NCBI GenBank assembly: GCA_020184695.1
Contig: JAANOX010000226.1
Span: forward strand, 1-6,051
Length of the DNA stretch: 6,051 bases
DNA from: Histomonas meleagridis 2922-C6/04-290x
Taxonomy: Eukaryota > Protista > Parabasalia
Direction: 5' to 3'
In this document: in pieces, positions 1-6,051 of the stretch
Layout: every line of letters begins with the position of its first letter
How positions within the stretch are numbered: the first letter of the stretch is position 1
The notes under the pieces: model-generated
What the model was told of the DNA's origin: nothing
The model's input: the letters and a program-made list of their open reading frames with translations, nothing else
The model's database searches: none
Position numbers and translations under genes: made by a program

Positions 1-729
1 GTTTATGTTTAAAAATTGTTGAATCGAAATTAGTTTTGATGAAATTGTAATCATAAAAAGAGTTCCTAAAACTTCAAATCCTGTAATATTTTTTCAATGA
101 TAATCCATTTTTAACCATATAATGCTATATTTTGCAATCTTTTCGTATAAAAATATTTACCATCGAGATTTATTTGATAAATTAATATTTTTTCCTTTTC
201 AAATTAAAAATTTATTATAACAAACATCAAAGAGCTGTTCTTCAGTAACAGTTTGTGATATTTTGTTAGCTTTCTGGAAAACACTATATTTCTAATAATG
301 GAGTAAAAGAGATTTAATTCATGAAATCTTGTAAAAACTTAAATATAATCTTACCAAAATATCATTAAAGAAAAAAATTTATTTGAATTTATAAATGGTC
401 TAATCATTTGAAAAATTGAATTCAAAACGATCAAAAAGCTTAAACACCAAAAAAAATCTTTTTTCTCTTGATTTTATATTAGGTTGTATATATTTTGATT
501 TAAAAATAAAATATAACTCTTTTTAAAATTTTTATAATATGTAATTATTTTTTATATCATCAGTTTAATTCATTAATAAAAAGTTATATTTTGTTATTGA
601 AAATTATTCAAACATGATTTTTTCCAAATTAAACACAATTTTATAAACTTATATTTATTATATATATTTCATTTATTAATAACTATAATTCATCCAAATA
701 AAAATTGAAAATTTGAAAATCAACTTGCG

Positions 730-741
730 AATCAGCTGATT
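730..741. other. Perfect 12-bp palindrome AATCAGCTGATT (copy 2: 3757..3768)
   Basis: Self-reverse-complementary and contains 4 G/C in an otherwise AT-rich spacer. Function unknown. Confidence 0.6.
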
Positions 742-942
742 TACTGAAAAATTGCTTTCCAGAAAATTGGTAAGAACAATTTTAACAAAACCTTGATATG
801 ACATTTATATCAATATAGAATGCTTATATTTTTGGATAAATTTTGGTGTTTGTATATAATACTTAGTTTTTTTACATTATTTTGATTAATAAATTCTTTA
901 ATTACTAAAATTTATCCACTTTAAAAAAAAAAGTTAAGGAAA

Positions 943-1012
943 TGTTAACTAGTTTCAGCTTTTTGCCATGAAATTCACTTATGGCAAATTTTAAATTAAA
1001 AAATTGTTAACT
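943..1012. repeat. TGTTAACT direct repeats (943-950, 1005-1012) flanking an 8-bp inverted repeat TTTGCCAT-N11-ATGGCAAA (962-988)
   Basis: Read directly. The same arrangement is present in copy 2 (inverted repeat at 3987-4013). Function unknown. Confidence 0.6.
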
Positions 1013-1102
1013 CTATACGGTTTATTTTTGTTGGAAAATTTTTGAAATTTGAAAGGGTATTTAATTGAGATTGAATAAAAATTTTGATCTAAATATATTA
1101 CT

Positions 1103-1108
1103 TCATTT
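1103..1108 (+). promoter_or_regulatory. Candidate initiator (Inr)-like element TCATTT, 9 nt from the putative +1 A to the ATG
   Basis: TTACT-TCATTT-TATTA-ATG. Matches the TCA(+1)Py(T/A) initiator that sits a few to ~20 nt before the ATG in Trichomonas genes. Low-information motif in AT-rich DNA, supported mainly by position. Confidence 0.45.
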
Positions 1109-1113
1109 TATTA

Positions 1114-2208
1114 ATGTCTGAAGAAATTTTATCAGTTGTTATTGATAATGGTACTTTCTCCTGCAAATCAGGTTATGCTGGGTCTACAATACCAGCATCA
1201 ATTATTAGAACAATTATCGGCAGATCATATTCAAATATCAATGAAATTTATATCGGAAACAATCTATTCAATGAAGATTTAAATTCTTTAAATTTATCAT
1301 ATCCAATTGAAAGAGGCACAATAATCAATTGGGATGATATGGAAAAAATTTGGACAGAAATTTATAATAATTTAAATATTCCATCAAATCAATATTCAGT
1401 TATTCTCACAAATTCAATATCAAATGAAGAAGAAGATGAAGAAAAAATTCTAGAAATTTTTTTTGAAAAATATAATGCTTCTAAAATTTGTGTTGCATAT
1501 CAACCGTTATTATCACTTTATGCAAACGGTGTTACAACAGGAACAAGCATTGAATTTGGTGATGGTATTATACAAATAATACCAATCATTAATAATAATA
1601 TTATTCAAATAGGTAAAAAATTTATTAATTTTGGTGGTCATGATATTACTACTTATCTTTATAATTTAATTGGTTTAAATTCATTAATTGAAGAAGGAAG
1701 TTTCAAAAAAGAAGAAATTGTTCGTAACATTAAAGAAAATTATTGTTACGTAACAATAAATTATACACAGGAATTAATTAAATCATTAACGACAAATGAT
1801 TGTAAAATAAATTATATTTTACCAAATAATCAAACAATCACATTAAATTCTGAAAGATTTCAATCAACTGAATGTTTATTTAATCCACTAATTAATGGTT
1901 CTACTCATCAAAGCTTACAACAAGTCGTTTATGATTCAATTACAAGTTGTGATTCTAATGTTCAAAATATATTATTTAATAATATATTTTTATCTGGTTC
2001 ATCTACAAAATTACCTGGTTTAAGTGATCGATTAAAAAATGAAATTATAAATCTTGCTCCTGAAGGTACAAATGTAAATATTTATTCTGTTTCTAATAGT
2101 TTACGTGGTTATGAAGCTTGGTTAGGAGGTGCACAAATAGCTGCAAATGAAGAAAATTTCATCACACGTAATGAATATGAAGAAAATGGTGCTGAAGTAA
2201 TTCATTAA
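1114..2208 (+). CDS. Divergent actin / actin-related protein, 364 aa, intronless (copy 1)
   Basis: Colinear with eukaryotic actin end to end: VIDNGT..CKSG (P1 loop), YPIERG..NWDDMEKIW, YQPLLSLYANGVTTG (Q137 region), GDG (P2 loop), EIVRNIKE, ERFQSTECLF, LSGSST.LPGLSDRL, WLGG, EYEENG. Family assignment is secure; subfamily (conventional actin vs a specific Arp) is not, so no symbol is given. Confidence 0.96.
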   Translation: MSEEILSVVIDNGTFSCKSGYAGSTIPASIIRTIIGRSYSNINEIYIGNNLFNEDLNSLNLSYPIERGTIINWDDMEKIWTEIYNNLNIPSNQYSVILTNSISNEEEDEEKILEIFFEKYNASKICVAYQPLLSLYANGVTTGTSIEFGDGIIQIIPIINNNIIQIGKKFINFGGHDITTYLYNLIGLNSLIEEGSFKKEEIVRNIKENYCYVTINYTQELIKSLTTNDCKINYILPNNQTITLNSERFQSTECLFNPLINGSTHQSLQQVVYDSITSCDSNVQNILFNNIFLSGSSTKLPGLSDRLKNEIINLAPEGTNVNIYSVSNSLRGYEAWLGGAQIAANEENFITRNEYEENGAEVIH

Positions 2209-2244
2209 ATCAATAAACAATTGATTTAACTAATTTTTTTTTTT
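2205..2244 (+). terminator. Candidate 3'-end processing signal: 10-bp hairpin over the stop codon, TAAA/AATAAA, then T11 tract
   Basis: TTAAATCAAT (2205-2214) + AAACA loop + ATTGATTTAA (2220-2229) is a perfect inverted repeat. The TAA stop is part of TAAA (2206-2209), AATAAA lies at 2212-2217, and TAATT at 2231-2235 runs into T11 (2234-2244). Function is inferred. Confidence 0.5.
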
Positions 2245-2646
2245 CTTTTTATATTTGTTTTTGTTATGAAAAATAATTATATATGAGATGTTATTAATAT
2301 TTAATTACAAAGAATAAATTTAATTATAATTTAATTTCTTAGAAATTCACATAATAATTGATTTAAATAGGAAAAAAATATAATAACAATAAAAGGAAAT
2401 CATGTATTGATTCATTTTCTAGAATATATGTAAAATATGAAAAATTAAAAATTAAAAATTTCAAATAATAGAGTATAAAAACTTAAATTATGTCCTTTGT
2501 TATCACTTATTTCCTTGTAAATAAGATAATTGGACTGTTTTTGATTATCATTAGTTATTTCAGAAAAAAAAATGTTGTAACAATAACTGAAATAGCCATT
2601 AAATAAAAAAATTGGCTAATCAAATACTTTCTGGTGTTTTTAAATC

Positions 2647-2658
2647 AGAATTAATTCT
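2647..2658. other. Perfect 12-bp palindrome AGAATTAATTCT (copy 2: 5672..5683)
   Basis: Self-reverse-complementary but AT-rich, so it may be chance. Confidence 0.4.
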
Positions 2659-4125
2659 CTTGAATTTGTAGGATTATCTTGTAATTATAGTTGACATCTA
2701 TGGAAACATTTTTTTGTAAAGCATATAAACCTATTTATAAAATTCAAAATTTTTGTATGGTTTATCAAAAAAGTGGCAGCAAATTTCAAAAATTTAAATT
2801 TTGATTCTTCTATTTATTTAATTCATTTGTTTTATTTATTATTGATTACTCAAAAATTTATTATTTATTATTTTAACGTTTAGTGAGAAAAATTGCATTT
2901 TTTGTAATAAAAAAGCATAAAATTTTATATATTTGTAACAAATATGAATTATAATTTAAAAATATAATCTTTGTTTCTTTGTGTTCTAATACAGTCAATA
3001 AAATGTATAATAATACTTTTAAATTTGTTTATGTTTAAAAAATTGTTAAATCAAAATTAATTTTGATGAAATTGTAATCATAAAAAGAGTTCCTAAAACT
3101 TCAAATCCTGTAATATTTTTTCAATGATAATCCATTTTTAACCATATAATGCTATATTTTGCAATCTTTTCGTATAAAAATATTTACCATCGAGATTTAT
3201 TTGATAAATTAATATTTTTTTTTTTTCAAATTAAAAATTTATTATAACAAACATCAAAGAGCTGTTCTTCAGTAACAGTTTGTGATATTTTGTTAGCTTT
3301 CTGGAAAACACTATATTTCTAATAATGGAGTAAAAGAGATTTAATTCATGAAATCTTGTAAAAACTTAAATATAATCTTACCAAAATATCATTAAAGAAA
3401 AAAATTTATTTGAATTTATAAATGGTCTAATCATTTGAAAAATTGAATTCAAAACGATCAAAAAGCTTAAACACCAAAAAAAATCTTTTTTCTCTTGATT
3501 TTATATTAGGTTGTATATATTTTGATTTAAAAATAAAATATAACTCTTTTAAAATTTTTATAATATGTAATTATTTTTTATATCATCAGTTTAATTCATT
3601 AATAAAAAGTTATATTTTGTTATTGAAAATTATTCAAACATGATTTTTTCCAAATTAAACACAATTTTATAAACTTATATTTATTATATATATTTCATTT
3701 ATTAATAACTATAATTCATCCAAATAAAAATTGAAAATTTGAAAATCAACTTGCAGAATCAGCTGATTTACTGAAAAATTGCTTTCCAGAAAATTGGTAA
3801 GAACAATTTTAACAAAACCTTGATATGACATTTATATCAATATAGAATGCTTATATTTTGGATAAATTTTGGTGTTTGTATATAATACTTAGTTTTTTTA
3901 CATTATTTTGATTAATAAATTCTTTAATTACTAAAATTTATCCACTTTAAAAAAAAAAGTTAAGGAAATGTTAACTAGTTTCAGCTTTTGCCATGAAATT
4001 CACTTATGGCAAATTTTAAATTAAAAAATTGTTAACTCTATACGGTTTATTTTGTTGGAAAATTTTGAAATTTGAAAGGGTATTTAATTGAGATTGAATA
4101 AAAATTTTGATCTAAATATATTACT

Positions 4126-4131
4126 TCATTT
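4126..4131 (+). promoter_or_regulatory. Candidate Inr-like element TCATTT (copy 2)
   Basis: Identical context to 1103..1108. Confidence 0.45.
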
Positions 4132-4136
4132 TATTA

Positions 4137-5231
4137 ATGTCTGAAGAAATTTTATCAGTTGTTATTGATAATGGTACTTTCTCCTGCAAATCAGGTTATG
4201 CTGGGTCTACAATACCAGCATCAATTATTAGAACAATTATCGGCAGATCATATTCAAATATCAATGAAATTTATATCGGAAACAATCTATTCAATGAAGA
4301 TTTAAATTCTTTAAATTTATCATATCCAATTGAAAGAGGCACAATAATCAATTGGGATGATATGGAAAAAATTTGGACAGAAATTTATAATAATTTAAAT
4401 ATTCCATCAAATCAATATTCAGTTATTCTCACAAATTCAATATCAAATGAAGAAGAAGATGAAGAAAAAATTCTAGAAATTTTTTTTGAAAAATATAATG
4501 CTTCTAAAATTTGTGTTGCATATCAACCGTTATTATCACTTTATGCAAACGGTGTTACAACAGGAACAAGCATTGAATTTGGTGATGGTATTATACAAAT
4601 AATACCAATCATTAATAATAATATTATTCAAATAGGTAAAAAATTTATTAATTTTGGTGGTCATGATATTACTACTTATCTTTATAATTTAATTGGTTTA
4701 AATTCATTAATTGAAGAAGGAAGTTTCAAAAAAGAAGAAATTGTTCGTAACATTAAAGAAAATTATTGTTACGTAACAATAAATTATACACAGGAATTAA
4801 TTAAATCATTAACGACAAATGATTGTAAAATAAATTATATTTTACCAAATAATCAAACAATCACATTAAATTCTGAAAGATTTCAATCAACTGAATGTTT
4901 ATTTAATCCACTAATTAATGGTTCTACTCATCAAAGCTTACAACAAGTCGTTTATGATTCAATTACAAGTTGTGATTCTAATGTTCAAAATATATTATTT
5001 AATAATATATTTTTATCTGGTTCATCTACAAAATTACCTGGTTTAAGTGATCGATTAAAAAATGAAATTATAAATCTTGCTCCTGAAGGTACAAATGTAA
5101 ATATTTATTCTGTTTCTAATAGTTTACGTGGTTATGAAGCTTGGTTAGGAGGTGCACAAATAGCTGCAAATGAAGAAAATTTCATCACACGTAATGAATA
5201 TGAAGAAAATGGTGCTGAAGTAATTCATTAA
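4137..5231 (+). CDS. Divergent actin / actin-related protein, 364 aa, intronless (copy 2)
   Basis: Same protein as 1114..2208. I found no nucleotide difference between the two CDSs. Confidence 0.96.
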   Translation: MSEEILSVVIDNGTFSCKSGYAGSTIPASIIRTIIGRSYSNINEIYIGNNLFNEDLNSLNLSYPIERGTIINWDDMEKIWTEIYNNLNIPSNQYSVILTNSISNEEEDEEKILEIFFEKYNASKICVAYQPLLSLYANGVTTGTSIEFGDGIIQIIPIINNNIIQIGKKFINFGGHDITTYLYNLIGLNSLIEEGSFKKEEIVRNIKENYCYVTINYTQELIKSLTTNDCKINYILPNNQTITLNSERFQSTECLFNPLINGSTHQSLQQVVYDSITSCDSNVQNILFNNIFLSGSSTKLPGLSDRLKNEIINLAPEGTNVNIYSVSNSLRGYEAWLGGAQIAANEENFITRNEYEENGAEVIH

Positions 5232-5268
5232 ATCAATAAACAATTGATTTAACTAATTTTTTTTTTTT
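5228..5268 (+). terminator. Candidate 3'-end processing signal (copy 2; hairpin 5228-5252, T12 tract)
   Basis: Same as copy 1 except the T-run is one base longer. Confidence 0.5.
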
Positions 5269-6051
5269 CTTTTTATATTTGTTTTTGTTATGAAAAATAA
5301 TTATATATGAGATGTTATTAATATTTAATTACAAAGAATAAATTTAATTATAATTTAATTTCTTAGAAATTCACATAATAATTGATTTAAATAGGAAAAA
5401 ATATAATAACAATAAAAGGAAATCATGTATTGATTCATTTTCTAGAATATATGTAAAATATGAAAAATTAAAAATTAAAAATTTCAAATAATAGAGTATA
5501 TAAAAACTTAAATTATGTCCTTTGTTATCACTTATTTCCTTGTAAATAAGATAATTGGACTGTTTTTGATTATCATTAGTTATTTCAGAAAAAAAAATGT
5601 TGTAACAATAACTGAAATAGCCATTAAATAAAAAAATTGGCTAATCAAATACTTTCTGGTGTTTTTAAATCAGAATTAATTCTCTTGAATTTGTAGGATT
5701 ATCTTGTAATTATAGTTGACATCTATGGAAACATTTTTTTGTAAAGCATATAAACCTATTTATAAAATTCAAAATTTTTGTATGGTTTATCAAAAAAGTG
5801 GCAGCAAATTTCAAAAATTTAAATTTTGATTCTTCTATTTATTTAATTCATTTGTTTTATTTATTATTGATTACTCAAAAATTTATTATTTATTATTTTA
5901 ACGTTTAGTGAGAAAAATTGCATTTTTTGTAATAAAAAAGCATAAAATTTTATATATTTGTAACAAATATGAATTATAATTTAAAAATATAATCTTTGTT
6001 TCTTTGTGTTCTAATACAGTCAATAAAATGTATAATAATACTTTTAAATTT

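Follow-up and report, generated by a model that had tools for sequence, protein, structure and literature searches.

Organization of the locus

The DNA analyzed here (contig JAANOX010000226.1, positions 1 to 6,051; the window hereafter means this whole 6,051-nt stretch) carries a gene for a divergent actin-like protein on a repeated unit. Self-BLAST analysis showed that the window consisted of 2.00 head-to-tail copies of a unit of about 3.02 kb, which shared 99.5% identity. Each unit held a single open reading frame (ORF), and its non-coding share was 64%. The two copies differed by 5 mismatches and 10 gap openings, mostly 1-nt indels in homopolymers, and the ORF was free of differences. When four units were compared, the ORF was nucleotide-identical in all of them, and every variable column (16/16) lay outside it, as would fit selection on the gene. 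The features of the unit and of its gene are listed in Table 1.

Table 1. Features of the repeat unit and of the actin-like gene (nucleotide positions in the window; substitutions in standard actin numbering).
Feature	Position	Strand	Remarks
Repeat unit copy 1	1..3026	+	One gene and about 1.93 kb of AT-rich spacer; self-BLAST
Repeat unit copy 2	3027..6051	+	Self-BLAST against copy 1
Actin-like ORF copy 1	1114..2208	+	364 aa, ATG to TAA; no intron needed
Actin-like ORF copy 2	4137..5231	+	Nucleotide-identical to copy 1
Spacer	2209..4136	.	17.9% GC
TCATT, initiator-like motif matching TCA[YC][TA]	1103..1107	+	Its A lies 9 nt 5' of the ATG; about 12% chance in a 20-nt window; weak hint
Phosphate-1 loop DNGTFSCK	1144..1167	+	S14T, G15F, L16S; D11 and K18 kept; G15 loss common to the neighboring divergent-actin clade
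D-loop remnant SYSNIN (aa 38-43)	1225..1242	+	7-aa deletion: 7 residues against 14 in actin between GR and (S/I)Y(V/I)G
Phosphate-2 loop EFGDGIIQ, then W-loop INNN	1552..1599	+	D154E, H161Q
W-loop INNN for YEGY (aa 159-162)	1588..1599	+	Y166I, E167N, G168N, Y169N
Former hydrophobic plug tip LINGS (aa 259-263)	1888..1902	+	L267N, as in '..LNG' of the neighboring clade
Adenosine loop SGSSTKLPG	1993..2019	+	G302S, T303S, M305K, Y306L
Shortened C-terminal helix and truncated end ...EVIH, TAA	2131..2208	+	W356F; 'ITR.EY' motif
AQIAANEENF (aa 340-349)	2131..2160	+	I345Q; 3-aa gap at 349-351 or 350-352, depending on the aligner
AATAAA, then a T-run	2212..2217	+	Starts 4 nt past the stop; fairly frequent by chance in 80% A+T

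The ORF product matched the Pfam Actin family (PF00022) over residues 3-364 (E 2.5e-81; 273.8 bits against a cut-off of 27). At the stop-codon density of the spacer, the chance of an open frame of 364 codons was about 1e-14, and none of the shuffles was open (0/20,000). Isoleucine (14%) and asparagine (13%) were abundant in the product, whose composition was strongly AT-driven, and many of its replacements were to N, I, S or K. The original prediction, made from the sequence before this analysis, had started the feature at nt 1225, which is codon 38 of the ORF, and had overlooked both the identical second copy and the circular or tandem arrangement of the locus.

The protein ended at VIH and lacked the RKCF of actin. 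The frame had no in-frame stops and used CAA for glutamine, the stop codon was TAA, and the peptide encoded downstream was unrelated to actin; therefore, the C-terminal truncation was considered genuine, as had been supposed, and not an artifact of a reassigned stop. Readthrough of the stop at 2206-2208 was ruled out as a way to restore RKCF, as the sequence beyond it reads INKQLI and then a stop. No obvious intron hiding RKCF was found in the sequence 3' of the stop.

Alterations of the filament contacts and the nucleotide site

Residues were numbered on a canonical 375-aa actin (L028:64-1188), and the sets of filament-contact and nucleotide-site residues were those generally assigned from published F-actin structures. 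The overall identity of the protein to canonical actin was 36%. Besides the D-loop (DNase-I-binding loop) and C-terminal deletions, the alignment held two insertions (1 and 2 aa) and one deletion (1 aa); no insertion exceeded 2 aa. The replacements described in the original prediction were all found: the D-loop remnant, the W-loop INNN with Y169N, the plug tip LINGS, and AQIAANEENF with I345Q and a 3-aa deletion, for which only the placement of the gap varied.

None of the 11 contact residues of the D-loop was kept. Elsewhere, the kept residues amounted to 4/23 in the longitudinal contact between subdomains 4 and 3, 3/13 in the hydrophobic plug, and 2/13 among the other lateral contacts. The barbed-end cleft kept 4 of its 15 residues (Y143, A144, G146, and T148), and F375 was absent, the protein ending at the equivalent of H371. 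Conservation was 13/75 at the contact residues and 105/276 in the remainder, a difference with Fisher p=5.7e-4 for this contact list.

Comparison with 100 actins and actin-like proteins showed that the ratio of contact to background conservation in this protein (0.45) was the lowest of all. A short D-loop was present in 19 of the 100, and a missing tail or a short 348-355 segment in a few others; the short D-loop, the absent C-terminal tail and the shortened 348-355 segment occurred together only in this protein. The conventional actins collected were 72-88% identical to the reference actin. Conventional actins share about 80% or more mutual identity.

The nucleotide site was half kept, with 13 of 24 residues retained (D11, N12, G13, K18, Q137, G156, D157, G158, G182, R210, K213, E214, and G301). 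The changes in the pocket were S14T, G15F, L16S, D154E, H161Q, G302S, T303S, M305K, Y306L, and K336G.

The central claim of the original prediction was a coordinated loss of both halves of the longitudinal filament contact. The loss itself was borne out by the D-loop, the cleft and the missing C-terminus; its confinement to that contact was not, since the lateral contacts were equally eroded, the nucleotide pocket was altered and the identity was low overall. Judged from its sequence, the protein is an actin paralog that has drifted over its whole length, with constraint apparently relaxed on every polymer surface, and not one that suffered a surgical loss of one contact pair. The same counts are consistent with the further expectation that canonical F-actin and binding of the cleft-dependent regulators would be unlikely.

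Predicted structure

The AlphaFold2 monomer model of the ORF product, a check proposed with the original prediction, gave a confident actin fold, with a predicted local distance difference test score (pLDDT) of 95.8 and a predicted template modeling score of 0.93 (94-sequence alignment supplied). Foldseek comparison of the model with G-actin structures gave template modeling (TM) scores of 0.92-0.95 and root mean square deviations of 1.6-2.6 Å, and the top 50 of 50 PDB fold matches were conventional actins. The modeled sequence is clearly compatible with an intact four-subdomain actin fold.

Sequence relatives

Because the claim of novelty rests on absence, an exhaustive HMMER scan of 1.84 billion representatives was performed; it returned 13,517 matches, none above 39% identity. 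Of 5.8 billion clusters searched through a word index, 11 were returned (best 36% identity), among them two Anaeramoeba proteins, one of which had a near-identical phosphate-1 loop (DNGTFSIKSG). Actins of giant-virus metagenome-assembled genomes (MAGs) were 33-37% identical to the protein, and loci in JGI metagenomes at most 38%, all through the generic word WDDMEKIW. When the C-terminal peptide specific to the family was used as a degenerate probe, no match was obtained in the IMG/VR-scale or JGI collections. An Asgard or bacterial origin of the actin was not borne out by the prokaryotic genomes: across 185,579 species genomes, matches of 32-44% came via WDDMEKIW only, and the family-specific word was unmatched. 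The exact protein was recorded on two Logan contigs, from runs ERR15966388 and ERR15966324.

In the PDB sequence search, the top 60 of 60 matches were conventional actins (best about 250 bits). Among them were actin chains from entries for dynactin and INO80 that also hold chains of actin-related proteins (Arps); no chain named as an Arp was present in the top 60 sequence matches or the top 50 fold matches. Twenty proteins from the top 150 matches were looked up, and none of the 12 that were named at their source was a recognizable Arp1-11 (0/12). Protein P0109 belongs to a cluster annotated 'actin-related protein'; its best PDB matches were conventional actins, and it is another divergent actin. 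The original prediction had named grouping with a known Arp subfamily as one outcome that would overturn it, and the best sequence and fold matches pointed to conventional actins instead.

Several of the relatives were observed in contexts of their own. The top scorers of the exhaustive search (P0012-P0021) were 541-895 aa long, and each aligned with the protein over two or three distinct segments, which suggests repeated or fused actin domains. By percent identity, P0036 was the most similar (38%); it lies on ENA contig ERZ17292903, about 1 kb upstream of a gene for a 694-aa ankyrin-repeat protein. P0036, P0088, and P0060, which are among the nearest tree neighbors, came from three ENA assemblies that follow one another directly, which points to a single study in which such actin paralogs are plentiful. 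Another neighbor, P0196, was found on AT-rich, telomere-less contigs with long empty flanks.

Actin genes of other settings were also met in the collected loci. Locus L017 (Logan ERR13858651, 1-1695) represents an entire nanochromosome of a ciliate, capped by (C4A3)n/(G4T3)n; its divergent actin has six in-frame TAG codons (reassigned stop). Loci L100-L102 are rumen-ciliate nanochromosomes capped by (CCCCAAT)n, 1.3 kb long, with 25% GC, the standard code and a low G+C content at third codon positions (GC3); their 360-aa actin is 34% identical to canonical actin and has a 6-residue D-loop remnant. Full-length eukaryote-type actin genes lay inside three bacterial contigs, namely a 243-kb Polyangiaceae MAG (L115), a 121-kb cyanobacterial MAG (L118) and a 34.5-kb Microcoleus contig (L121); it is plausible that these are horizontal transfers and not contamination. 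The very short, low-coverage actin contigs in bacterial isolate assemblies (L106-L113, L116, and L122-L142) are probably eukaryotic contamination, possibly human or animal; in a BLAST comparison with all collected loci, they matched over the generic actin core only.

Phylogenetic analysis

A quickly built tree (96 sequences) was star-like, and in it the branch of the protein measured 1.3 substitutions per site. Its weak neighbors there were the product of a ciliate nanochromosome (C4A3 telomeres, in-frame TAG), Trichomonas and Tritrichomonas paralogs, and Logan proteins. This grouping with ciliate and parabasalid orphans was rejected, as it looked like long-branch attraction between unrelated organisms and changed in a more careful tree.

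In the careful tree, built from 51 labeled sequences, the protein fell in a 12-member clade with support of 97 (ultrafast bootstrap) and 86 (Shimodaira-Hasegawa-like approximate likelihood ratio test). This clade included the Tritrichomonas musculus paralogs P0041 and P0104 and metagenomic proteins. The protein and the clade had several derived states in common that are not found in canonical actin, namely the loss of G15, L267N, the loss of W356 with 'ITR.EY', and H161Q, and a 'PIIN' W-loop was present in several clade members. Identities within the clade were 31-38%, and a profile of the clade retrieved ordinary actins first, its consensus reverting to canonical actin. The protein may be placed, softly, in an unnamed family of divergent actin-like proteins that includes the Tritrichomonas paralogs.

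The spacer

The spacer was non-repetitive. No second gene was found in it: it held short ORFs only, which differed between the copies, and none was conserved whichever genetic code was applied. Scans for tRNAs, Rfam families, telomere repeats and remnants of Pfam or PHROG families were negative. The spacer matched neither plasmid records nor the collected actin loci and was absent from IMG/VR, and no replication-initiator gene, iterons or recognizable origin were found in the unit. The GC content of the gene was 25%. Its GC3 (8.8%, 1114-2205) was about half the GC content of the spacer (2209-4136), which is opposite to the simple expectation for an unconstrained spacer.

A scan for bacterial promoters and terminators gave results at or below the shuffle expectation except for one hairpin. 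This hairpin, TTTGCCATGAAATTCACTTATGGCAAA, has a 10-bp stem followed by a T-rich run and lies at 962-988 (copy 2, about 3988-4014), about 125 nt 5' of the ATG; it was the sole terminator-like match (0.2 expected). A perfect 12-nt palindrome, AATCAGCTGATT, was present at 730-741 (copy 2, about 3756-3768, with an adjoining 1-nt insertion), among the least AT-rich patches of the spacer. An excess of G over C (skew +0.15 to +0.22) extended over 2001-2750, persisted about 500 nt beyond the stop and reversed at about 2900-3000, the counts being small. The skew past the stop could reflect a long 3' untranslated region or transcript, or a replication asymmetry.

Arrangement of the unit copies

The two Logan contigs were 3,052 and 3,051 bp long, and each had a 30-nt terminal direct overlap, as in circular k=31 unitigs. 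The two contigs and the unit of the window were circular permutations of one another with different start points, and none of the three assemblies extended into unique flanking sequence. Two copies with 99.5% identity would have been merged by a de Bruijn assembler; hence, the window must derive from long reads or from an overlap-based assembly. A unit that closes on itself would be seen with a tandem array just as with a circle. A ciliate nanochromosome was ruled out, as telomere repeats were absent and the unit was circularly permuted. A search of the literature on actin genes carried by circles or arrays yielded nothing relevant, and no published case was found in which such a unit carries a divergent actin-like gene and nothing else.

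Interpretation

Taken together, the data are best explained by an orphan, non-polymerizing actin-like protein whose gene stands alone on a unit of about 3.02 kb that is repeated head to tail in many almost identical copies, most likely as a homogeneous tandem array (probability about 0.6). The gene would be a fast-evolving paralog of eukaryotic actin that has kept the four-subdomain fold. Nucleotide binding is probably retained, perhaps as weak binding or with poor hydrolysis; G15F and H161Q argue against a normal polymerization-coupled ATPase. The protein would be unable to insert a D-loop into the cleft of a neighbor or to accept one, and binding to profilin, cofilin, gelsolin, WH2 domains or DNase I seems unlikely. 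Since little is left of the cleft, and the canonical interfaces for longitudinal and lateral contact have been lost, a monomer or complex subunit is most likely, and the protein may act as a non-polymerizing Arp-like subunit or regulator and not as F-actin. The host would be an extremely AT-rich eukaryote with the standard genetic code, and the tree neighbors and the Anaeramoeba phosphate-1 loop give weak hints of a metamonad- or parabasalid-like protist; the initiator-like motif TCATT, sought as a mark of a parabasalid host, is about 12% likely by chance. The unit may have been amplified by a demand for dosage or by selfish amplification to what is probably a high copy number.

Some points weigh against this reading. 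The star-like quick tree disagreed with the careful tree, and the comparison with Arps was made through PDB chains and source names. The free tree places the protein apart from the viractins, and the approximately unbiased (AU) test did not reject its grouping with them (p=0.26). The high pLDDT owes part of its value to the alignment supplied, and the loss of canonical contacts is also compatible with a different polymer.

With respect to the arrangement, the same protein could be carried by a high-copy extrachromosomal circle of about 3.02 kb, possibly including multimers, that is, a eukaryotic minicircle or extrachromosomal circular DNA (eccDNA) devoid of a Rep gene. This is a real but minor possibility. 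Two runs yielded circular k=31 unitigs in different permutations, the length of the window is exactly 2.00 units, which a long-read assembler would produce by going round a small circle twice, and unique flanks were missing from all three assemblies. However, long homogeneous arrays, which are far commoner, yield the same circular graph on assembly, and two slightly different units on one contig imply reads that spanned more than one unit. A homogeneous tandem array is therefore favored over a circle as most likely, on the basis of these priors and because the unit has no replication gene, iteron set or recognizable origin and resembles no plasmid or viral record. That the unit is a self-maintained, high-copy, Rep-less, single-gene nuclear minicircle of an AT-rich microbial eukaryote is somewhat more doubtful. 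Most speculative of all would be a role of the actin-like protein in the service of such an element, for example in its segregation, by analogy with the ParM-type actins of plasmids.

With respect to the protein, polymerization through non-canonical contacts into a novel filament with a changed lattice, as in Arp1 or bacterial and viral actin-like proteins, is unlikely. The predicted fold and hinge are intact, the cleft retains Y143, A144, G146, and T148, the nucleotide site is half preserved, and a high gene dosage would fit a structural protein; yet the contact replacements are largely N, S, Q and E, as the AT-driven composition would favor, and form no new hydrophobic patch, no orthologs exist to reveal a conserved alternative surface, and G15F and H161Q speak against it as well. 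Much less probable is that the gene derives from a known Arp subfamily as a divergent ortholog, such as the nuclear Arp4/5/6/8 type. The shortened D-loop and the non-hydrophobic plug are found in many Arps, and several nuclear Arps have G15 replaced by an aromatic residue, but every top PDB sequence match (60) and fold match (50) was a conventional actin, subfamily-specific insertions were absent (none longer than 2 aa relative to actin), and the named relatives (0/12 Arp1-11; P0109 closest to conventional actins) pointed the same way. A giant-virus-derived or virus-borne actin related to viractins, or a part of a virus-associated small episome, is the least probable of these alternatives. Giant viruses are AT-rich and encode actins, and the AU test tolerated the viractin grouping; against this, the viractins of the collected loci were 64-69% identical to actin with contacts and nucleotide site intact, compared with about 35% for this protein, which was itself 33-37% identical to giant-virus actins. 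Moreover, one gene per 3 kb in a unit that is 64% non-coding is unlike a gene-dense viral genome, and both the family-specific motif and the spacer were absent from IMG/VR.

The orphan protein on an amplified unit would be an unusually extreme case among many poorly understood lineage-specific actin-like proteins. The model suggests how far an actin can drift while staying foldable, with 36% identity, eroded polymer contacts and a lost P-loop glycine. As the protein has no orthologs, it says little by itself about general actin biology. The locus is the more useful lead, as it may reflect strong dosage selection acting on a cytoskeletal protein of non-canonical type, or else a small eukaryotic episome of a new type.

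Comparison with known systems

The plasmid-partition actins (ParM, AlfA, and Alp7A) also combine an actin fold with small, possibly circular, multicopy DNA, but the present protein is of the eukaryote type (PF00022) and not ParM-like, and its unit has no adaptor gene or centromere-like iterons. The viractins of Imitervirales are likewise intronless actin homologs in AT-rich DNA outside the canonical cellular context; they differ in keeping the contact and nucleotide residues (about 64-69% identity to actin) and in lying on gene-dense viral contigs. With Arp1-Arp11, the protein shares the actin fold, modified or lost polymerization surfaces, an altered nucleotide pocket and a likely role as a monomeric subunit or regulator; it is nearer to conventional actin than to any solved Arp, in sequence and in predicted structure, and has none of the subfamily insertions.

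The locus resembles tandem arrays and the circles that they shed (rDNA, histone, and tubulin genes; yeast CUP1-type amplicons; eccDNA), in which few-kb single-gene units are arranged head to tail, homogenized, and assembled as a circle. It differs from them in its spacer, which takes up 64% of the unit, is non-repetitive and is unlike any known sequence.

The closest parallel to the protein is found in the actin-like proteins of protists. The Paramecium tetraurelia family consists of 30 actin, Arp and actin-like protein genes, with identities down to about 30% to the actins of other organisms, and the most diverse paralog is 17.6% identical to actin1-1 (PMC1852557). The DNase-I loop and the hydrophobic plug are generally weakly conserved in this family, most of the residues that interact through the C-terminus are lacking, and some members are 'orphans' that fit no class (PMC1852557). 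Divergent actin paralogs of protists are typically eroded in the D-loop, plug and C-terminus (PMC1852557), and, as far as its sequence tells, the present protein is an orphan actin-like protein of a kind already known in protists. Like the proteins of Paramecium and the paralogs of Tritrichomonas musculus and Trichomonas vaginalis (about 330-400 aa, PF00022, 17-60% identity to actin), it has weakly conserved D-loop, plug and C-terminal regions and no orthologs across eukaryotes, and it shares derived residues with the Tritrichomonas-containing clade. It differs from them in being the most contact-depleted of the 100 proteins compared, in its unique combination of three shortened or lost segments, and in being encoded on an amplified single-gene unit of 3 kb.

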